Shown here: piece after piece, positions 9,701 through 63,140 of the stretch
Position numbering within the stretch: position 1 is the stretch's first letter
How the letters are laid out: each line of letters begins with the position of its first letter
From: Bugula neritina
Lineage: Eukaryota; Animalia; Bryozoa
DNA: 64,000 nt
Reading direction: 5' to 3'
NCBI GenBank assembly: GCA_964035545.1
Contig: OZ037770.1
Span: 1,736,001 to 1,800,000, forward strand
Position numbers and translations under genes: made by a program
The notes under the pieces: model-generated
The model's database searches: none
What the model saw: only the letters and a program-made list of their open reading frames with translations
What the model was told of the DNA's origin: nothing

Positions 9701-12700
9701 ATAAATGGAAACGTTGGATAAATGCTATAAGCTATCAACTATAATATACGCAAAAAACAAAGCATAGTAATGCAATAACAGGTTTGACGTAGCTGAGTTC
9801 CTTAAGCAGAATAGAAACATTAAGGGACCTCCTGAAGAGCCCCCGGGTTCTCTCTTAGCATTCCACGGATTGGTGGTTACTCCGTATATGGGGTTAGCGC
9901 AGGAGAATGAGAGGAGACCCTGCGGCACATTCGTTGTTATGAAAGGTATGGCACCCAAATCTTTCAGCACCTGCAAGAACATGTCAGGTATGACATGATA
10001 GGATGTGTCAGTCAAAACACTCCTCATTGAGTGTCATAGAACTGACTGCAATGTTATTGTGGAGTTTTCATGCACTGCATGTAATGTAATGGTTATCAGT
10101 TATTTTAATTATTATTAAAAAATTATATTTTATGCAAATATTCTGTACTGGTCAAATTAAAAGAGAAATATTAGTAGTAGTCATATTTTTTCCTGTTGGT
10201 TTATTTATATCAAGCTGTGTTTTCAGCGAGAAATAAATAAATTAAATTGGTGCTAAATTTATCAAAATTAATAAAAGTAAAACTAAACTAGTTCGACAGT
10301 GACTGCAGTGTATTCAGTTCGACTGCCATTATATAACTTTATTCGGCATGAACAATGAATAAGCGGGAGGGGTGGTGGTACCTGAGGTTATTGCGGTTAC
10401 CTGAACTCTCGGGCTATTCTTCTCAGAGATGAAACCAAGTCTACGAGTACAGCCTAAAGTTGCGCAATATCCCTCAACGTCTTCGTTCTCCTTCACACTC
10501 AGCGGTACCCCAAAAAGAGGCTTACTTCCTCTTTCAGAGACTGGAATGGCATCCAGTTGTCTTGCGTACTCCTGAAAAAAAGCTTCCACATGAAAACAAA
10601 AATATTCCTGAGAAAATTGTCATCTACAAATGAAAGTCTAAAATAGTTCATCGTGAAAAATATTAAACTAACAAAAAATTATAATATAAATATATTATTT
10701 ACTGTGTAACATTTTTTATACCTCAACATCAAAAGATATATTCACTGAGAACGGCTTGAAAACACAAGCATTGAAGGTGAAGGTTGGCATACTGATTCAC
10801 AAGAGAGCAATGCTGGTATTTAAACACTCACAAAAAGCAAATTATACCCAAGACATATTTTAGCATGGTCAATGTTTTGCATCGAAAAATAAATATTTAT
10901 TGTGTTGTTGTTTATGGTATCACATTGGTTTACAAATACAGTAAAGTGTCATATGGGTATCAGCTACTCAGTAATTAAAATCAAGTTGTCAGTCTATGAA
11001 TTAGCAGTCATCTAGCATGATAGCTTAGAAGGTGACACAATTACTGACCAGTTGGGACAAAGTCTGACAGAATATTTTACTAGTTGACAGATTAACTGGC
11101 AAGTTGACAAAATCCCCAACTAAATGATACATTAACTGACTAGATGACGCAATAGTTGAGACATTGATCAACCAACTGACACAATTACTGACCAGATGAT
11201 ACAATGACTGACTAGTTGAGACATTAACTAATTGACACACTATTTGACAAATTAGCTAACACAATCTTTTACTAGTTAACATATTAGCTGACAAGTTGAC
11301 ACAATTACCGACTAGGTGACACAATAACTGACTAGTTGACACATTAACTAGCTGACACACTAGTTGACACACTAGCTGACACAATACCTAGCTGACACAT
11401 TAACTAGTTGACACACTAGCTGACACATTAACTAGCTGACACATTAGTTGACACATTAACTAGCTGACACATTAGCTGACACAATGCCTGACCTCAACAT
11501 CGTTGGCATCGATTGGCATACAGATGAAGTTGAAGCTTTGGTTTTCAATGGCAGCTTTTCGCTGAAACGCTCTGACCACGGTCACAACTTTCAGCTCTCC
11601 ATCTTTAAGAGACTTTGTGAGATCGGCAAACTTCATGGAAGTTATCCGATCTACTTCCTCCAGTGTGATTCGCTACACAAACGGGAAAAGAAAATAAAAT
11701 TAGTGAGGTTTTTAAAAAGGAAAATAGTGATATTAGATATCTCATACATACCTACTGTTTCTATAGTGACATTGGCTACACTTGCTTATATTGTAAACTT
11801 GATTTCTTTCTATGATTTCCCAAAAATCGATTTACAAACAACAGTTATACAAATTCTATAGCTCTTGATACTACAACATTAATTATTTAGTATAACGCAA
11901 CTTCAAAAAACACGTTTCCAAATGCAAAAAGAGCAAGGAAGCTAAATATTCTATCACTTTATGCTACATGATTATATTTAAAACTACCATTCCTGTATAT
12001 CATCTAGTGCTATACAAATGTGTGGTAGTGGAGTATCTCCCATTTCTATACCACACAAAGGAGGCTATGTTGTAACCATGACAACAAATCTAAACAACCT
12101 CCTCATAAAAACTTACAGAGTCTGAGTCCACTATCTCACACCACCTGGCTCTAGCTTTCTGAATTTGTATTTTGTAAGCTTCGCGCTTTTTCTTGAGCTT
12201 ACGCTTAATGATAACAAAATCAGTGAGTTTCCACAAAGCATATGTCACCTGTAAGTAAAAACAGAGTAAGTTATACTACATACAAGTAGAGGGATAGCAC
12301 AGTAACTTACACAATGTGTAAGTTAAGAGAAGTAACTACTACAGACTAATACCCTCAAGAACCTCATTACATGACCTAAGTGTAAATTGAAAATCGTAGT
12401 GAAAACATTTGTATTTTGGAGCCAAATAAGTACTGAATATCAGCAGTTATCATATAAACTCTTAGTTCACGCATTTCTAGAACCGCAAGCAAGAAAATTG
12501 CATCTTCCAGTAAATAATGCAGTTTACAGGCCTAGCCACACGCTGGTGAGAATCTCACGAAACTCGGTGACGATTTTCGTGAGTTATCCTCTCGTTATGA
12601 CCAGCCACACACTCGTAGGACGAAACACATAATGAATAGTCATTGAATGAGTCTTGCACGAGATACAAACAGGAAAAAATTGTAAACAGAGAAACATGGT

Positions 12701-18796: not shown

Positions 18797-34602
<15,806 letters not shown>

Positions 34603-36083: not shown

Positions 36084-38469
36084 TCATCGACAGGAGCAGT
36101 TAGCGTTGAAGATGGAGCACCAGCACTTCAGCTTATCACAGCATTGGTCATGTGATTGGCAGTATGCTGCAATGAGAGATCAATGTATTTTATACATGAG
36201 TTTATACTGCGTGTTTCAACAGAGCTCAATGGGTTTACACTGTCAACATGTCGCTGAATGGTGTACCTATGCTGAATTATATTGTTTTTAGAGATCATAA
36301 CAAGCTGTACTGTAATTTTTAGTTAATTATTTTACTTAAAAATCACGTAGATGATGTAAATGATGCTATATTTTTTCCTGTGTTTATATCAAATAGCTAC
36401 TAGATATATAATTGGAAACTTCTATTGATCAATTGAAAATTTTAAGGATGTTATGTTTATAAAAAGAAAATTTTATTATGTTTATAAAGAAAGGTGAAAG
36501 TTTTATTCTTGTAAAAAAGAATTTATAGAAAACTATTTGCCAATTTTATCAGTTGTTGGTAATTGTTTTGTTTTAGGTTAATATATATCAATTATCAATA
36601 TAATATAAATGTATAATATACAATTTCACACGAATCATCCCTCCTATGATACGGACACATGCAGGTACAGTATTATATCACCTGGTTTTAGTTTTAAGAG
36701 TTGACTCTATCTACAAGCTTCTACTAATTAGACTACTCTACTTAATATACATCTGATCATGTGACCTCACCTGACAGTTTCCGGCAGGTCTCAGGTACTT
36801 TTCTTGGCAGGTATTTTCTCAGGTATTCCTCCACGGACATCTTTCTCTTCACTCTGTGTTTATGTAAGTAAGAATTATACATATGTCTCCATATTATGTG
36901 CATTGTTTTCATTAGTTATAACTGTTGGAAGTTTACATAAGCTGGGAAAGCTTTTCCTTAATGCATGAAAGCTTTTCACAAGTCATCTCAGCTATGCCAG
37001 CTAAATTATGTTTTTTTTTCCAATTCATTATAGCTACTACACAATAGCTAACCTTTTTATTAGTATAAAAACCGAGCAATTGTCACCTATATCCACACTT
37101 GCATCGTTTCACACTATAATTGTAACTTGCAACTAGAATAACTTATGATAGGCCTATATAATCTTTTTTACATTGCTATTTTCTTCAGTCTGCGACAATA
37201 AATATTTTTATACACTTGACTCAAAAAAATAAAGTTGGAATTTAAAACACCACCCATTTGCTACAATTTTAGTGGATCAAAATTTTCAGTTCAGACAACC
37301 TGACAGCTTTACAGCTGCTTCACAAATCTTATAGGTTAAGGCTGCCAAATGCACAGTGGGCCTATTGTTCAAGACAAAATCAATAAGAGAATACCTAAAT
37401 TAGTAAAATTTTCATTTAAGCTAAATTGCTCTTTTGCAAAAGCAAATTGAACTTAAAATTCAAAACGAAGTTGAAAGAAGTTTTTGGTTTATATCTGAAA
37501 TTATAATAAATGTATATATGCTTTTAAGCCTGTAATATTTAAGAATAAGTCAACAAAAGCATTAAGGTACTATAATTTGTTATGGCATGCAAATAACTGA
37601 TATAAATTTTATTGAATCACAAATTGAGCCTGTTACTACTTACACTGACTGAGTCAAACAATTCTAGAGGACTTGATGAGTTCCTTACCTGAGATGGTTA
37701 GGAGTTTCTTCTTGTTGTATTGTTGTATCATATCCTTTGTTTGACTCTAAAAAAATAAGAAGACCACATGTAAGAGTAAACAATAACATGTTGTAACTAT
37801 AATATCAAAATTCTTTTAGTTTCACTAGTTTCACTATAATTTATGCATAATTATAAAAAAGTCATTTGCGTGTTTTACTGTGAAATATTAACATCAAAAA
37901 AATATTTTGTCTTTTTTCGTAACTCAAGTTTTTCATTTAGAATCTTAAACTTTATTGACTTTTGCGTAAAAGTTTTGATTAAATAATGTTTTGCTAAGAA
38001 AATTTTACAGGTTCAATAATCGTATACATGAAAATATATTATACGCGCCTTTTTCGGAATTTCCTTTGAGTAGGTTTTATCTAAATTATAGCACTAGATC
38101 AGCTACATATTTAATCATATTTAAAGAATAAAATTCTAATTTGCTTATTTATATAACATGACAGCCGCATCAGATGTTTTTTACAGTCACTTACTGCCTA
38201 AACTTTTTAAGAAAGCATACAAATTTCAAAGTTAAATATTTTATATAGGCCTATTAATACTTTAAAAAATCACATTTATGCAAATTGGCACTTCGCGCTG
38301 CTAAAATTTCAATAAACAAAATGTAGGCCTACGCTATATTCAAAGTTGACGCTGTTTTAGGTAGGCTGTCAAATATTTCTTACAATAATTTCTTACCAGA
38401 AAGTTGTTCGTCTGCTGCACATAACACAAACATCAGTACAAAACAAGACAGCATAATGGTGACCTTCAT
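36084..38469 (-). CDS. Secreted 8-Cys inhibitor-cystine-knot (agatoxin/agouti-like) prepropeptide, gene A, 98 aa
   Basis: Exons 38469-38397, 37746-37689, 36853-36771, 36166-36084 (intron phases 1,2,1). Protein: MKVTIMLSCFVLMFVLCAADEQLSESNKGYDTTIQQEETPNHL-RVKR-KMSVEEYLRKYLPRKVPETCRKLSAYCQSHDQCCDKLKCWCSIFNANCSCR*. Signal peptide, RxKR convertase site and C-x6-C-x5-CC-x4-CxC-x6-CxC framework. TATA near 38551-38558; AATAAA on the minus strand at 35895-35900. Confidence 0.88.
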
Positions 38470-40789: not shown

Positions 40790-43056
<2,267 letters not shown>

Positions 43057-44193: not shown

Positions 44194-46031
44194 TCAGTGC
44201 TCTAAATTAAAGCCAAAATCCTTCACATAAGATGGGGCACAGGCACAGCCTCTCTCAACGTCTTCACACCAGCACACCATGCTCCCACAGCAATCGTCAG
44301 CAGATCTACACTGTTCTGCAAATAGGTCTCACAGGGTATTAAGCTCACACAAGTAAGAAACCCCTGATGGAAAAGGTTTTGTGTTAAATCAACCTATCAA
44401 CTTAATCAGATAGAGAATAGTGGCAATTATGACTGGATGTTCTTTATAACATCTCTAATAACTTTCGTCGGAGTTCGAACCCATGATCTCAGTGCTTACT
44501 TGGCAAACACCCTAACCCTTTATGGACCACGGCTACTCACTGCATGTACACAATTTAACTCACTGAATAGGATTCTCTTCTTTACTGCACTATTTTATTA
44601 TCGTCTAAATTCAGGTGATTTGTCTAAACGGGTCAATATTGAAGTGTGTTGTAAAGAATAATGATGCATATTTGAAATGAATATACTTACTACCCGAGGA
44701 ACGGCAATTTGGATTGTAAAACTTTAGGCTTCTTTTTCTCTTCCTACAATATATAGAAAAAATATTTGCAGTATAATTTTAAATTGCTTGTGTTGTTTAT
44801 GGAAATATATTTAAAAAATATCTCGAGAAACTTGCGTACAAATTTATGAAAACAATAATTGATTGCGTTGAAAAGTTAACTTTATAGAAATTGAGTATGA
44901 TTACAATTGAAATGAATTGAAGATTAATTAGATTATCCTCAAAAATAAATTTGATACTATATATAATCTATTTATACACTAACAATTGGAACAGAAAACT
45001 TTCTACAGCATACATATATAACAATAATATAGTACAATATGTATAATTAATTATAGCCTCATTAGTATCATAATACCATCAGTATATATGAAACTGTTTC
45101 ATGTTATTAATTTCTTCTGCTACATCCAACAAAATCCCTATAGATTTGTTAAATGTGCAAACACTTGCTCTGTCTTAGTAATATTTTTACTTATATATTA
45201 TAATTGGTGACTTTGTTGTAACTAGCTGAGCCTAACAACAAAATAAATACTTCTATATATTGTATAAAAGTGACTTTTTGAATTATTATACCGTTCATCA
45301 AAATGCAGAGAATTGATGAAGGAGTTTAAATAGTAATCATGGTTAGGCATTTGACATCACTGCATGGCAGGTAAACGGAAGCAAAAATAATTGCAAGCTA
45401 TATAGGTTAGTATTCTATGAAGTTATAGATATTTTTTACCCTGCACTCCCCGGGTAAAGAGCCTGGGTCAACTCAAACCAATTAGGATTCTCCATATTGT
45501 AGACTCTTTCCTCGTGCTGTCGAATTAACCTGTCTCTGTATTTACGAGCAGCGACAATGGAAGGATGTTCAGGGGCTGCAAAAAAGAATTTGTATTTTAT
45601 TTAATAATTTGTTCCATTTATATAACATTTATTTAAAATAAAATTTTAATTATTTATGATTAGAAGTTGGAAAATCTTTGTCGATGACTATATAACAAAC
45701 TAATTTCTAAGTTGAGATTACTGCCGTACAGTGTTCATTACATAATCAGAAGTCAAGCAAGTCAATATTCATAAAAACACAAAAATTATAAGCACAAGCA
45801 ATTTATATTAGTTAAGCAGGATTAGCTATATATAATAATCTGGGAAATTCCATTATTATAAAAACGGCTATATAAGTTATACTGTAATGAAACTGATAAA
45901 ATTTAATATATAAAATTAGTCATAATTAAAATATATTATTTCGTAGTTTTATAATTACTTGTTGTATCTCCTGATGCCCCAAAAACAAACACTGCAAGTG
46001 TCATCACAGACAACAGCAATAGAGTCTTCAT
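44194..46031 (-). CDS. Secreted 8-Cys knottin prepropeptide, gene C, 127 aa
   Basis: Exons 46031-45959, 45575-45440, 44743-44691, 44315-44194 (phases 1,2,1). Protein: MKTLLLLSVMTLAVFVFGASGDTTTPEHPSIVAARKYRDRLIRQHEERVYNMENPNWFELTQALYPGSA-G-KRKR-SLKFYNPNCRSSGKQCRSADDCCGSMVCWCEDVERGCACAPSYVKDFGFNLEH*. Confidence 0.88.
44341..44538 (-). mobile_element. SINE family copy (gene C intron 3)
   Basis: The reverse complement is homologous to 34119-34330; B-box GGTTCGAACTCC. Confidence 0.75.
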
Positions 46032-49756: not shown

Positions 49757-50455
49757 TTAGAGATTTGACAAAATTATAAAAAATTGTCTTCTATTAACTG
49801 CAAAAAATAGGTCAGCAGGTTTACTGTGAAAATAACTTATACATAGTCTATTTATAGTATGATGTGCTCTATATACCTGCTGATGCTTCCAAAGCAAATA
49901 CAGTAAATGTGATCATCAACAACAGCAACAGAGTTTTCATGTTAACAGGTGATTGGCAGGTACTTGGTAATGTCGCAGATACTGTTTACTGAGTGTCAAT
50001 TAGCTGTTCCGATGCTATTATATAAAGCTTGCTCAGACACATGGATTACCATTTTAGCCAATCAAATAAGAGTCTGCAAAACAAATAAACCAATCAAATT
50101 TTAGTAACAACCTGCATATCACAACATGTCACTTCAAGCACCTGCCTACAACCTGCCAGACCATTAATTGTTGATAACAAAATTAGAGTCTAAATAAAAT
50201 CCAACACATCATATAATTTTATAGTAAATATAGCGTACATATTTGCTTGATATATGTTTACTTAAACTTTAATGGGATACTTTTGAATATTTTATTGCTT
50301 TAATTTAAATTGTACAAAAAAAATCACACAAGTTTATAGTTGAATTCTAATCATAATCCTATATATAATAAACACAGCACATATATCTTTGTTTAACTGT
50401 ATTAGTTTACTGATGATTCAGATGGGAAGCTTTTGAAATTTTAATGTTTTTCTTT

Positions 50456-51015
<560 letters not shown>

Positions 51016-52235
51016 CTTACTTGTTTTGATTGTCTAAACCTTCTGTAGCCTCATGCTTATAAACTAAACTAACTCCATGCTCCTACTAATTTTAGTATGG
51101 TCATAACAGCCAAGCTCTTTATTATAGTTATCGTTATATAATATACATCAATAAGGTTGCTCAAATATGTACCTAATAATTATGGTGCAACAATAGTAAT
51201 TTTCATCTATTTATTATACTTCTCATTTTCCATAATTACTAAAACACAACTTGTTTGTAAAATCCACTCCTCCAAATGCTGATGGAATTTTCCATTGTTG
51301 TTATGAAGATTATACGTATACCTTGAAGAAACACTTTTCATTATACAACTAAAACAATTCTATATAATTTTTGAGCTGCAGTATTAACGTTAACTTATTG
51401 TCACATTAATTTTTTCTATATGTTATTAGGGACTAGTGGGCAGTGGCTATAATTAGTGGTTAAAAAAATTCATAATTTGTTTTCATGGCATAAATAAAAA
51501 ATCTATTGATGTACTTTTATTCTGCCTATAGACTATGAGTCAACTAAAATAATTAAGTAAATTTAATATTTACCTACAAGCAGTACAACTCAAAAAGATT
51601 TTGAGTTATCATTCCTGAAAAAAAGCTGATGAAAGGGTGTTTTTAAGCAGATTAAAGACTGTTTACTATTGGTGAGAAAAAATCTCCACGACTGGATTCT
51701 ATTCTATTAATATTCTATATAATATTACTGATTATAATACTACTATAGGCATGCAAATGTATGTCACTTGCCCAGTTTTTAGACTGTTATGTATAATAGT
51801 ATAATGGGGAAACAACTCATACACTTGAAAAGATTGCAAAAATCTCTTAAATACAAGTAATTGAATTTATAGGCCTATTATCCGAATACTTTAAAAAAAG
51901 TTGTTTTATATAGCTTCTTTTTTGTTTATTAGATAGTATTGTTAATATCTAACTATAGTAACCATTGATTTAAAGGTTTTACTTTGTTATAATGCGTTAT
52001 TAAATTACATAAATCATATATTTTAGAATATTCGAGTAAACTCTACAAACTTCTGCAAACAGAAAAATCAGCGTTTGGTCATTGACTGTTCGTATTATAT
52101 GAGAATGTTAAACTAACTAAATGTGTTAACATTTAGGTGATTCATAATATCTAATTCATTCATTATACTAATGTTGTATGGTTTTAGAAATAGAATTTCT
52201 GCAAGCTTAATTAAAGTGTTATATATAATGTTCGC

Positions 52236-52408
<173 letters not shown>

Positions 52409-53499
52409 AATATAACAAGCATTATATATATAACAGTTTAATTGTGTTTTATTGTTAGAGAAAGTGTTTGCTTTTTGCTTTTGAGAACAGTAGTAATGAA
52501 TTTAAATCTATGTTCTATATTTAGAATCTCAAAGAGTCTAAAATAAAAGTTGTCTAATCATTCGAAGACCTAAATAACATATAATATCACATTTCTGCAA
52601 TATATATAGCTAAAAATCAATAATGTATATATCAATTTAATTTGATACTTTGTCAATTCTTGAAGTAACCTTGCAATATGCATTAAATACAGCAATAATG
52701 AAATGATGGCTGTTATAATTATAGAAGATCAGTTTAATATAATAATATAATGACAATAAATCTACACAGCAAAAAATTAGTTGAACTTCTAAAATATGGT
52801 CACACTTGTAATCTATATATAGTTTATTGTGCATATCAATTTTGTCAAGTAGTTTATATATTATGTAGTTTCAAGGTTTCTACACCTATATATACTATAG
52901 CCTAACATACACAAGTGTATATGGGTTTTATAAAATAGAGCATAAAACAGTGAGCTATTGTGTGCAAGAGAGATTTTATCTTACCTTAAACCTTACATTA
53001 GTCTACAAAACTTTCCATGCATATCGCTCTTTCAAATAACAAACAAATTATATGTTTAAGATTTAATTTGATATGTATATGGAAATTTTCAGAAATTTGC
53101 CAAGTGGTTGACACATGAATGGAATATTACTGGAAATCAAAACCATGATAGCAGTTTCATCACTACAATATTTGTGTAAAGAGGGTGGAATAGTGGATGC
53201 GAGGGTGTAATTTAAAGCTCTCAGGCTTGTTTATGAAACAACTAACCCAGCAACTGCATAAACTAATTTTTGCAATAAATGATTGAAATACGATAGAAAC
53301 ATAATTACATAATTTAGTAGTTTTATGTCAACACACCCAAAGACAATTGCTATGGACAATTCAAAACTAGTAGTTGGATAGAAACTTGCAAACATTATCA
53401 CTTCCATTCCGCATAAACACCGAAATATATTTAAGGGAGAATTTGAAAGATTTTAGACACAGTTTATTATTGAGCTTGCATCTAGTTTACTAAATCAAG

Positions 53500-54718
53500 A
53501 TGAAGGTTGTATATTTGGTATTACTTGTGGCTTTCTTGACAGCTAACCTCTTTTCAACATCTTCCTTTGCAGGTAAAAGTAACACACGCTTTTATTATCA
53601 TACCTTTAAGGTGTTCTTAAAGTACTGATAGCTATTAATTATAATTTTAAGCTCTCAATAGAAGTTTTTTAATAATCATGCTTAAATCTCCAAACTTCGT
53701 GTCGCAGATAAAAATTAGTTCAAAATTTCTATTAATTTTCTTTATGACTTTTACTTTAAAACAAGACTTGAAATCACTTTACTTTCCACCTTTTCAAAAT
53801 GCAGTACATATAGGTAGGGTATATTGAAATTTGATTATTTTTGCCTTATCTATGTTATGTATTGATATTGAATAACTGCTTTTGTTGGTAGGTATTACTG
53901 GTGAACTTTCTTTTAAGAATCAAACGGCATTGACTCGTGCAAAAAAGTCGACGATTGCTAGAGTGTTTTGGCTACAACGCTTGGGATGGTGTAGGTTTCA
54001 CAATTAAACTCTTTTTTACACAATGGAATTTATTTTGCTTTATAATATAAATATATTATGTTATTGCATTTACAGTATATATATGGTTATACACTCGTGG
54101 ATTTAAATTATATTATTTTTATTACATTTCAATATGCATATTTTATATATTATATTACACATATAAAATATTTATATGTTTTATAGACAGCGCGCTTAGG
54201 GCCAGACCCGAGTTGAATCACTACGAAGGCAAACGTGTAAGTATATTATAAGATATTTATTTCACTGTAGTGATTTTACCAAAAGTTAGAATTGTGTTTC
54301 ACAGATCAGAGTGAGCCAAACTGTTTTTGAAACATAATAATTTTTAATTCATTATAAATGCGAACTTCTGCTGCTATTGTTATATAGATCTATAAACACA
54401 AGTTTTAATTTTACCGTGGGAGAGCCAACTGAACACGGATTAAATTTTTTATTAGTTCTAAGCTGTGAATAAAAGCGCTTAAACAGTTTCATTGTTTTAA
54501 AACCAGAATTGTTTTGTATATAATGGTTGTTTAGGCTCTCTTTGATAGAATATATACGGAGCTTGACCATATAGAGAAGAGAGAGGAGGCAATTCTTAAA
54601 CATTAGTTTGCATGTACTGAAATATTGCATTTATGACTGACTGTAAAAGATTAAAATAGGCAAACAAATATTATTTATTATTTTGTAGACTCACTTCCGG
54701 TTTGAAGATCTGGGTTGA
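53500..54718 (+). CDS. Small neuropeptide-like precursor, gene F, 50 aa, predicting two amidated peptides
   Basis: Exons 53500-53572, 54187-54236, 54689-54718 with good splice sites (gtaaaa/ttttatag; gtaagt/ttttgtag). Protein: MKVVYLVLLVAFLTANLFSTSSFA-DSALRARPELNHYE-GKR-THFRFEDL-G*. TATTTAA near 53427; AATAAA at 54822 and 54832. Confidence 0.75.
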
Positions 54719-55040
54719 TTGAAGACTTGGAGAATGGTTAGGAAAATTGACTTGGAATTTGAATGTTATGTCATATCTTCTATATATATATATAAAACTG
54801 TTACCTGTGCTTCTAATTGTTAATAAATTACAATAAAGGAGAAATTTGAAAATATTATATTTTTAAGTTGGTTTTGAATATTGATTCTGCAAAACAAGTG
54901 AATTTATTATATAATTCAAATTTTCAAAAATAGGGTTTTGTTAAATATATTTCACTTTTAATTAACAGCAATTTATAGAAGTGTTGATAAATAATGTATT
55001 CTAACGACACATAAATAGAAGACAGGTTGATTATTATAAC

Positions 55041-56266
55041 TTATAAAGAAGTATCAGCTGCACCATTTCTATAAGCCTCCAATCTCTGTGCATATGTCAC
55101 TCTTCTACAAAAAAGTATATTTATAATCTCCAAAAACTTGACTTAAAGAATATAATTTTAAAACCCAAAAAAGTGTTGAGCAAAAATTTCTTCTATATGC
55201 TCTAAAATATTTTGATACAAGTTGGATTTATGGTTAACATGCAGCTACTTCAAATGACTATTGTAATAAAAAGGAATATTGCTAGTTTAATGACTTAACA
55301 TTTTTCAATTAAATTGGCAATAATAAACATTAGAAAAATACTGAAGCTAAACAAATTGGTTCTACACTGATTATAAAACTGAATATGCTGTACATACTAC
55401 CATACACAAAATAAGTTTTACATCTTCCTAACATTAGCCAAGGACCCTAAAGTAATTTCATACATGCCAAGTTTCTCGAAACAAAAAATTTTTCCTAATC
55501 AAAATTTAGCTTATTTCATCTAAAAAAATTATCCAAGCTCTCTTGCATTCTTCAGAGAACATAATTATGTTAGTAGAAAAAATTGAGAGTATATATATAT
55601 ATATATAAATGTATGTAAGAATATTTGAATTTTAAAAGTACATGAATCAATATTATATTTAAAACATGTTAAGAATGACGTTAATTCTTAGACATACTGC
55701 AGCATAACTACTGCATAATAACTGCTTACCCTGAACCCCATGGGCGAAAGCAAATACCACCAAAGCAGCCGCGTGGGAAACAGCAATTTCTATTGGTGTG
55801 GCATTTTCCTACAACACAACAAAGTTGGTGATACAAGTTTTCAATAAATCAGAATAATGAGACTTTCAGATAAGTTCATTTTTTCATTATTCATCAATTC
55901 TTGTAAGATTTAAAACTTTTTTAGCTTCATGAATTAAGAATGAATCAGTTTATATGGTAATTTTTAGCAAAGTTTTAATTTTAGAAGTACGCCACTGTGC
56001 GCCTTCACCTATATTTGCCAGAAAATTACGTCATTTTTTTACAACAAATAAATTTTAGAAGCACCATTCAATCAGGAAATGGCCGAGAAAGGTGAAAAAG
56101 AGTTGTGACTGCATGCAAACTTACATGCAGTAAAATAACATGTGTGTGTGTGAGTGTTTGTGTGTGAGTGTTTGTGTGTGAGTGTGTGTGTGTGTGTGTG
56201 TGCGTGTGTGTGCGTGCGTACGTGTGTGTATGTGTGAGTGTGTGTATGTGTGTGTGAGTGTATGTG

Positions 56267-56317
<51 letters not shown>

Positions 56318-58012
56318 GTGTGTGCGTGCATGTGTGTGTGAGTGTGTGTGCGTTCGCGTGTGCGTATGCAGTGTGCAGTGTGCAGTGTGTTTGTTCTTGT
56401 GTGTTTAAAGAACAATTTGCTAGAACTCCTCACTTCACATAAAAGCAAGCATATAACTGTAACGTTACGTACTGAACCATCCCTGGCAGTGAGTTCCATA
56501 GTCTTCCAAATTCATTGCTATAATCTCCCTAAAACAGACAGTTATATAATTACTCAATTGCCATGAAAGTCAAAAACTAAATCTATTCTGTAAATTTGTA
56601 TGCAAACTATAGTTTTGATTGCATATGGTGAGTCTATGGCATTCCAGTTATTGCATGTTTATACAGGACACAATAGAAGAATGTGCACTGTATTTGCATA
56701 TAAATTATAAATCATATAAGAATTGTTTTGGCAATATTGCAAAATTGTACTACTTAAAATTTAGTATATTAAAACTGTTTAGAAAATATTTACTTTTGAT
56801 TTAAATTAGGAGAACAAGTTTGATAATTTTACTTAGGCAGCAATTACACCAGCATAAGTTCGCAATCTTCAGTGCCAAAAAACTTCTAAAGAATTATGCT
56901 CCACACTTTATTATTTCAAAAAGTTTACTATGATACATACATATGCTTCCTATATATACTAATTCATTGCTCTTTACTTACAGTCGTTCCCGTGGGACTC
57001 CTCGGGATCTGTAATATTTCAGTCTTTCTACAACACAAATCATTTATGTTTTGAAAGCTGAAATGCTCTTTTATTTTCATCAAATTGACACTTTTAATAA
57101 TGTAACACAAAGAAATCAATAATAACAGCTTGCCTATAACTAAATATAATAGTTTCTATCCATAAAGCAAATTATGGAGAGAACAATAGCTGTTAAGAAG
57201 TTTTTTGCCCACAAAAAGTGAAAAACCATGAATTTATGTGTTTGTTGACAACAGAGTTAATATGTTGTGTATGCACACAACATATAAATCCTATTTGAGC
57301 TACCTGAATAACGAAAGGTGATCTTGTCAAAACCAATTGCTGTATAATACAAGAGATTGACAACGTCAACTACCTTATTTTATTTTTAGGTAGACACAGT
57401 TTTAGGGTGCTAATAAATTATTATAAGCAATCTAATTCTTCAGCAAAATATATTTTATTATTTTAATATTTAGTATATTATTGTAATATGTATTCTGTTT
57501 AGCTCTCAGCTCTTATCTTTTACATAACCATTTAAGGTTTTACTTCATTTTGAAAAAAAAATTATTATATATTAATTCCTTATACAGTTATTTTTTTAAA
57601 AAGTTTCAATAATGTTATGAATAAATTTCTATATTTTTTCAGCTCAAATAAGTTTAATAATAAAATGAGTAAATGCAAGCAAAATTAAAAGTTCAAGTTG
57701 AACTTTAAATAACCCATAAGAGAAAAGGATTTAAAGTAATGTTTGATTAATGGAGATATCTGTCATTTTGAGAGGCGCAATTAACTTATATACAAGACTC
57801 ATTATGTTAAACACAAAAACAGCTATCTCTCCTAAATTTGTGTTAACTATAACTGTAAACATTTATATATTATGCTGTAGACAGTAAAAGTCTTTATTAA
57901 AACTGGTTGTTGATGTTTGCTTACCATGAATCCGCTGTGGGGACAACTTCTGTCTCGCCAGAGTGTAGACTAGGATAGCCAGCAGAAGGAGTATCTGAAA
58001 GACTTTCTTCAT
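55041..58012 (-). CDS. Secreted 6-Cys ICK (C-C-CC-C-C) prepropeptide, gene E, 110 aa
   Basis: Exons 58012-57925, 57027-56982, 56528-56473, 55808-55730, 55104-55041 (phases 1,2,1,2). Protein: MKKVFQILLLLAILVYTLARQKLSPQRIHERLKYYRSRGVPRERLEIIAMNLEDYGTHCQGWFRKCHTNRNCCFPRGCFGGICFRPWGSGRVTYAQRLEAYRNGAADTSL*. TATATAAAA on the minus strand at 58107-58115; AATAAA on the minus strand at 54903-54908. Without the last splice the frame stops right after WGSG. Confidence 0.82.
56141..56365. repeat. Imperfect (TG)n microsatellite in gene E intron 3
   Basis: Direct inspection. Confidence 0.95.
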
Positions 58013-62094: not shown

Positions 62095-63140
62095 GTATAG
62101 GGTTTGTAGGATTGGTTATGTACATAAACAAAGCGACCATCCACCTGCAGTATTGAAAAACCTACCAGAAAATATAAATAAAGGACTTAGCTCACTATCC
62201 TGCAATGAGGAGGAGTTTAACACCACCAAGAAGCACTATCAAACAGTGGATATGACTATAACTTAAAATATAACCCGACACCCAAATCCAACAACAACAA
62301 TAGAAATAGAAATAGAAACATATTGTGGTACAACCCACCTTTTAGTTCAACAGTAAAAACCAAGATAGGGAAAAAATTTCTTCAAATCATCGACAAATGC
62401 TTTCCACTATTCAACCAACTAAGTAAAATTTTCAATAGGAAAACCGTAAAAATTAGTTACTCATGCATGCCCAACATGAAAAATATTATTGATGGCTCGA
62501 ACCATCACAAACTTAAAACCGCACACACCCCTACTACCACTACTAAACTAAATAACACACAATGTAACTGCAAACAACCTTCCCACTGTTCACTAAATGG
62601 TAAATACTTATACAAAGACGTAATATACCAAACAACTGTAACAAGACATGACAATAATTCCAGCCATTCATACATAGGACTCTGTTCGACTACCTTCAAA
62701 ACCAGATTCAATAACCACAAAACCTCTTTCCTACATGCAGATAAAGCCAACAGCACACAACTCAGCAGACACATCTGGAATTTAAAAGACAGCAATACAA
62801 AATTCAGCTTAAAATGGAATATTTTAAAAATTTGCAAATCATACTCAAACCTAACCAACAGATGTAACCTATGCAGCTATGAAAAATATATAATTTTAAA
62901 ACAACCGGAATTATCCTCCCTCAACAAACGAAAAGAGCTTTCCACCACGTGCAGACATAAATGCAGATTTTTACTTACGCACTTAACAGACGCTAGTTAA
63001 TACATTCCAGCGTAGCAATACACTAACAATGCTAATTTCAAAACAAAATCACTCAACCGTACACACAACAACCTGATGATCGTAGCTTACACTACGTGAA
63101 ACAATATTGTAGTCAATAATATGAAGATCTAAGTTTATTT
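62095..63140 (+). mobile_element. 5'-truncated Penelope-like retroelement (RT C-terminus, Cys-rich linker, GIY-YIG endonuclease)
   Basis: ORF 62323-63000 contains WYNPPFS, KISYSCMPNM, a CNC...C linker, VIYQ...SYIG (GIY-YIG), RFNNHK and CNLCSYEK. A frameshifted upstream segment reads VHKQSDHPPAVLKNLPENINKGLS. A hammerhead motif follows the ORF, and (TA)n flanks both sides. The Cys-rich linker suggests the Neptune-type group. Confidence 0.88.
63070..63114 (+). ncRNA. Degenerate minimal hammerhead motif at the 3' end of the Penelope-like element
   Basis: CTGATGA-tCGTAG cttaca CTACGt-GAAA-CAAT ATTG-TA: palindromic stem III, GUA triplet, weak stem I. Confidence 0.65.

Follow-up and report, generated by a model that had tools for sequence, protein, structure and literature searches.

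The stretch of Bugula neritina DNA analysed here, 64,000 nucleotides long and hereafter the window (G000:C6:1736001-1800000 of a 216-Mb assembly; AT-rich, 32% GC), probably contains a tiny three-exon gene on the forward strand that encodes a 50-residue secreted precursor, from which one or two small amidated peptides would probably be released. New here is a second copy of the gene, carried in a duplicated block. The observations made in this analysis concern the anatomy of the locus, its duplication and the codon positions at which the two copies differ; taken together they lead us to favour, with some but not great confidence, a real secreted amidated-peptide gene that is unannotated and lineage-restricted, is present as two diverged copies and most likely serves in signalling. 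Peptide signalling in bryozoans has hardly been mapped out, the single dedicated study of Bugula neritina neuropeptides having described 11 precursors (Wong et al. 2016; PMC4990251). If the gene is expressed, a lineage-restricted and recently duplicated amidated peptide joins the Bugula list, and a short synthetic peptide becomes available for larval settlement tests in what is a major fouling organism. How the melanocortin system arose is a question on which the candidate gene would have no bearing. Rather, it carries a caution, namely that a match of three residues in four to a famous pharmacophore, within a peptide of eight residues, is no evidence of kinship.

Gene model and predicted precursor

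The features of the locus and of its surroundings are collected in Table 1. Translated separately, the three exons give 50 codons in total and the 50-residue product described from the sequence; the preliminary description had proposed just such a three-exon precursor, and the exon-by-exon translation and the GT-AG introns agree with it. Exon 1 reads MKVVYLVLLVAFLTANLFSTSSFA from 53500 to 53571, while the G at 53572 opens an Asp codon that is split by intron 1 and completed by the AC at the start of exon 2, ahead of SALRARPELNHYEGKR. An A stands at -3 of the start ATG. Both introns have good donors, the second a perfect GTAAGT, and both acceptors (TTTTATAG/A and TTTTGTAG/A) are T-rich. In the second copy (copy B; the gene in the window is copy A) the equivalent of the first AATAAA is ATTAAA and that of the second is unchanged. 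Such anatomy does not by itself demonstrate a gene, because motifs of this kind come easily in AT-rich DNA and the reader had a free choice of splice sites.

Table 1. Coordinates of the candidate peptide gene, the duplicated block and the neighbouring Cys-rich exons (positions in the window)
Feature	Position	Strand	Details
TATA-like box TATATTTAA	53426..53434	+	66-74 nt before ATG; TATTTAA kept in copy B; putative promoter element
Exon 1, coding part	53500..53572	+	ATG, 24-aa signal peptide; donor CAG/GTAAAA
Intron 1	53573..54186	+	614 nt, GT..AG, phase 1; 94.7% identity to copy B
Exon 2	54187..54236	+	(D)SALRARPELNHYE, then Gly-Lys-Arg amidation/cleavage signal; donor CGT/GTAAGT
Intron 2	54237..54688	+	452 nt, GT..AG, phase 0; 84.6% identity to copy B
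Exon 3, coding part	54689..54718	+	THFRFEDL, Gly, TGA
AATAAA, two occurrences	54822-54827, 54832-54837	+	104-119 nt past the stop; putative poly(A) signals
Duplicated block	49801..57299		about 7.5 kb; from a BLASTN comparison of the window with the 80 kb that follow it; copy B at G000:C6 about 1822549-1853334
Knottin-like exons	36087-36179, 40793-40900, 44197-44328	minus	9 to 17 kb from the peptide gene, upstream
Five-Cys exon of convergent gene	55808-55730	minus	KCHTNRNCCFPRGCFGGICFRPWGS; inside the duplicated block
Signal-peptide exon of convergent gene	58012-57925	minus	MKKVFQILLLLAILVYTLARQKLSPQRIH, phase 1

The exon translations also contain the elements that the preliminary description had named, that is, a signal peptide, a Gly-Lys-Arg site and a C-terminal Gly, with an amidation glycine on each of the two peptides. 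Read directly from exon 1, the signal peptide opens with the basic MK, continues with a hydrophobic core of 16 residues and ends in STSSFA, where -3 is S and -1 is A. The amidation signals are ...YE-G-K-R and ...DL-G-stop, and both are the same in copy B. The whole product lacks Cys, has one HFR motif and has no YGGF. Fifty residues place it at the very short end of the range of secretory precursors.

From these elements we infer transcription, processing, amidation and a signalling function for the gene. Signal peptidase would cleave after ...SSFA and a prohormone convertase after Lys-Arg, a carboxypeptidase would trim off the Lys and the Arg, and the glycines thus exposed would be converted by peptidylglycine alpha-amidating monooxygenase. 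THFRFEDL-amide would be the likely active product. The second product would be DSALRARPELNHYE-amide, which may be a spacer only, since Glu-amide termini are rare. The active peptide might then act through a receptor of its own as an orphan neuropeptide, a hormone or some other secreted signal. Domains of the PHM-type family PF01082 (Cu2_monooxygen), which also includes DBH-like enzymes, are represented in the genome by 19 exon-level matches above the cut-off; amidation is in this sense possible, and no more.

The duplicated block and the pattern of substitution

A whole-genome search with exon 1, exon 2 and 1.5 kb of DNA from the locus returned one further copy, within G000:C6:1847923-1849435, which lies 58.5 kb downstream on the same strand, so that the 216-Mb genome holds two copies of the gene only. 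Over roughly 1.5 kb, introns included, copies A and B are about 91% identical. In copy B, about 22 kb of additional sequence (G000:C6 about 1823756-1845894) separates the part of the block that corresponds to window position 51397 from the part that corresponds to 51394. That copy B is a haplotype of the whole region left uncollapsed is unlikely: only some 7.5 kb of 58 kb is duplicated, and the 22-kb insertion interrupts copy B, which marks the block as a segmental duplication. The only public sequencing run matched by the locus is a DNA run (X1), which may be the assembly's own sample; its variant letters are mostly the letters of copy B, and both copies are thus present in that read set. Within intron 1, a cluster of variants in X1 at 53736-53786 fits neither copy, which indicates a third haplotype and a locus that is polymorphic in the X1 sample.

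Copy B retains the ATG, both donors, both acceptors, the stop and an open frame. The flanks of the two copies differ by many insertions and deletions, the 153-nt coding sequence by none. The coding differences amount to five bases, four of them synonymous third-position changes. Exon 1 has a single difference, AAG>AGG, which replaces K2 with R in the signal peptide; exon 2 has two, both synonymous (AGC>AGT, Ser; CAC>CAT, His), as has exon 3 (TTC>TTT, Phe; GAT>GAC, Asp). The one replacement being in the signal peptide and the other four changes synonymous, the predicted mature peptides are the same in both copies. As an empirical null we took the 189 non-coding substitutions of the same duplicated block, among which a change would be synonymous in a random frame in 22.8% of cases. 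Against this spectrum, four synonymous changes out of four in exons 2 and 3 have P = 0.0027, and at least four out of five overall have P = 0.011. Of the other two plus-strand frames, one has no synonymous change and the other has 2; one frame on the minus strand reaches 4 as well, but it holds a stop codon. The five substitutions thus suggest purifying selection on the peptide reading frame, and the evidence that they give for it is moderate, not overwhelming.

The level of identity, by contrast with codon position, is uninformative. From 53400 to 54300 (promoter, exon 1, intron 1 and exon 2) the copies are 95-98% identical, whereas 53250-53399 and 54300-54599 are at 79-89%. Because intron 1 is conserved as strongly as the exons, codon position alone counts. 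The tract of high identity could be the product of gene conversion, or the intron could itself be constrained. An Rfam scan for a non-coding RNA in the conserved intron found no family there, and only sub-threshold microsatellite-type miRNA matches elsewhere.

That there is no gene at all is the most serious alternative, and we regard it as a real possibility, though clearly the less probable one. A chance ATG, a hydrophobic frame and GT and AG sites would in that event have come together in a duplicated non-coding block, with the synonymous changes due to luck or arising as a by-product of gene conversion. The conservation of intron 1 at the level of the exons, the mere five informative substitutions and the cheapness of promoter, poly(A) and polypyrimidine motifs in such AT-rich DNA all speak for it, as do the blank searches described below. 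On the other side, chance must account for a synonymous pattern with P = 0.003 to 0.011 against the block's own spectrum, and for a frame, start, pair of strong donors, pair of acceptors and stop that are kept in both copies. It must further account for a signal peptide, a GKR site and a terminal Gly that stand together within just 50 codons.

Expression, relatives and Cys-rich neighbours

The search of public sequencing runs for the locus, in which X1 was the sole match, returned no RNA run, and X1, being a DNA data set, contains no spliced joints there. Given that a fully assembled transcript is expected to carry about 14% of the sampled words and that the reporting threshold is 5%, this blank speaks, if only mildly, against a strongly expressed gene in the indexed runs. 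A rare neuronal transcript is compatible with it. Likewise, a word-indexed protein search gave no candidate, either with the open frame surrounding exon 1 or with that surrounding exon 2; its reach is proteins about 22-73 aa long that have three exact 5-mers in common with the query. The product and its close relatives are accordingly unpredicted in that protein collection. Neither the genome nor the word-indexed proteins yielded a homologue beyond copies A and B, and this want of conservation across species weighs against the gene. Neither predicted peptide is among the 11 precursors listed for Bugula (PMC4990251), and the two peptide strings were not found in the literature searched. The earlier remark that the precursor belongs to no recognised neuropeptide family is thus in keeping with protein searches, Bugula list and literature alike.

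Nevertheless, the candidate shares with the described Bugula precursors (PMC4990251) an N-terminal signal peptide, a Gly plus dibasic site, a C-terminal Gly and a small multi-exon gene, although it has no sequence likeness to them, is only 50 residues long and holds one copy of each peptide. Among known peptides the -FRF- tripeptide invites another comparison. FMRFamide-related and LFRFamide peptides occur in lophotrochozoans and have this tripeptide in common with the candidate, but in the candidate FRF is followed by E-D-L-G-stop and not by Gly and a basic site, so that the C-terminal Arg-Phe-amide is missing; with a predicted Leu-amide at its C-terminus, the candidate is not an RFamide.

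The neighbourhood is rich in Cys-containing exons. The three knottin-like exons upstream have the common spacing C-x6-CC-x4-C-x-C-x5/6-C-x-C; they lie about 4 kb apart and look like a tandem gene cluster. A convergent gene for a secreted Cys-rich protein, predicted from its exons, lies 1 kb downstream of the peptide gene on the minus strand, and Pfam gave no match to it. Two other assignments of exon 1 were considered and rejected. It might have been a signal-peptide exon common to the neighbouring knottin genes, yet no similar exon was found: exon 1 resembles no other exon in the window, or in the genome outside copy B. It might instead have been joined to a Cys-rich exon on the plus strand, yet there is none within 8 kb downstream. 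With its unique signal exon and no such exon downstream, the gene is not one of the neighbouring knottin genes in disguise, nor a copy of one that has decayed.

The five-Cys exon of the convergent gene differs from its counterpart in copy B by one synonymous change, TGC>TGT, and since it lies within the duplicated block, two small secreted-peptide genes were duplicated together. It is therefore conceivable, albeit improbable, that the peptide is real and secreted but exocrine, defensive or toxin-like, co-duplicated with the convergent Cys-rich gene and neither neuronal nor endocrine. The presence of both genes on the block, the Cys-rich exon's single synonymous change and the cluster of knottin-like exons in the window are what recommend this explanation. 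However, toxin superfamilies typically share signal sequences, and the signal-peptide exon is unlike any other exon of the genome. Further, the predicted peptide is short, linear, acidic and amidated, a combination more typical of signalling, and physical linkage alone is weak evidence. The co-duplication with the Cys-rich gene shows that the two are linked; it is no evidence that they function as a pair. A signalling peptide is, in our judgement, much the better reading of a secreted product from this locus.

The likeness to the melanocortin core

The preliminary description had drawn attention to the HFRF of THFRFEDL, set it beside the melanocortin core HFRW, and speculated that it could form an agonist/antagonist pair with neighbouring agouti-framework knottins or mimic the hormones of predators. 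What the neighbours are bears on this. That the gene lies beside knottins is loosely right, in that Cys-rich exons are found 9 to 17 kb and 1 kb away, but the nearest, at 1 kb, has a different cysteine pattern. The spacing of the three knottin-like exons recalls the CxC...CxC part of the Agouti/AgRP and spider Toxin_9 knottin folds; these exons lie on the opposite strand to the peptide gene, and only one of them gives any Pfam signal, in each case below the curated cut-off. The exon at 36087-36179 scores 18.6 bits with Toxin_9 (PF02819; cut-off 21.3) and 12.8 bits with Agouti (PF05039; cut-off 27), and the Agouti model had no match on the other three Cys-rich exons. As a statement of family membership, the agouti framework is not supported: it comes down to 12.8 of 27 bits in one exon, and the genome is blank for the model at E <= 1.

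On the earlier suggestion THFRFEDL-amide would be a melanocortin-like agonist, whether paired with AgRP-like knottin antagonists or mimicking vertebrate predator hormones, and we consider this very unlikely. All that can be said for it is that the peptide contains HFR with an aromatic residue next to it, and that one knottin exon 17 kb away has a sub-threshold Agouti score. That exon fits Toxin_9 better than Agouti, and even its Toxin_9 score is below the cut-off. Trp is a key residue of the melanocortin pharmacophore, and in both copies the core is HFRF, with Trp missing, and not the invariant HFRW; acidic Glu-Asp-Leu follows the motif in place of Gly-Lys-Pro. Searched in six frames, the whole genome gave two matches to PF00976 (ACTH_domain), at E = 6.3 and 9.9, both on other contigs and neither above the 27-bit cut-off. 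At the peptide locus the same model had no match, in an exon that, at only 9 aa, offers it low power. The claim of a pair or of mimicry thus fails on the missing Trp, on PF00976 at the locus and on the genome-wide blank of the Agouti model. According to published genome surveys, melanocortin receptors are confined to chordates (PMC3622036, PMC8591103).

The comparison with the vertebrate hormones themselves is similarly discouraging. With alpha-MSH and ACTH from POMC the candidate shares His-Phe-Arg followed by an aromatic residue, and it carries an amidation signal; it differs in having Phe for Trp and in its flanks, Thr- and -Glu-Asp-Leu as against melanocortin Met-Glu- and -Gly-Lys-Pro-Val. 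The architecture of POMC, with its N-terminal Cys-containing peptide, several MSH cores and beta-endorphin, is absent from the candidate. A match to HFRW at three positions of four is expected in about 5 per 10,000 random octapeptides, and many famous motifs might have been matched in this way; the original caveat that such a match can arise by chance was well placed, and chance is the best explanation for what HFRF and the melanocortin core have in common. A bryozoan-specific signalling peptide, THFRFEDL-amide with or without DSALRARPELNHYE-amide, that acts through its own receptor in, for example, larval settlement or zooid behaviour is compatible with the observations. In its most exotic version it would be a predator hormone mimic that is made alongside the co-duplicated Cys-rich peptide and acts on vertebrate melanocortin-type receptors; we hold this to be very improbable, and for the mimicry there is nothing but three residues.

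Finally, other open frames stand out in the remainder of the window. Exons of a GART-type purine-synthesis gene with GARS and AIRS motifs (22073-27241, plus strand) and an amidase-signature exon with GGSSGG (9725-10027, minus strand) have, by eye, an ordinary housekeeping look. An intact intronless open frame of 225 aa at 62323-63000 on the plus strand adjoins long (TA)n arrays and may derive from a mobile element.
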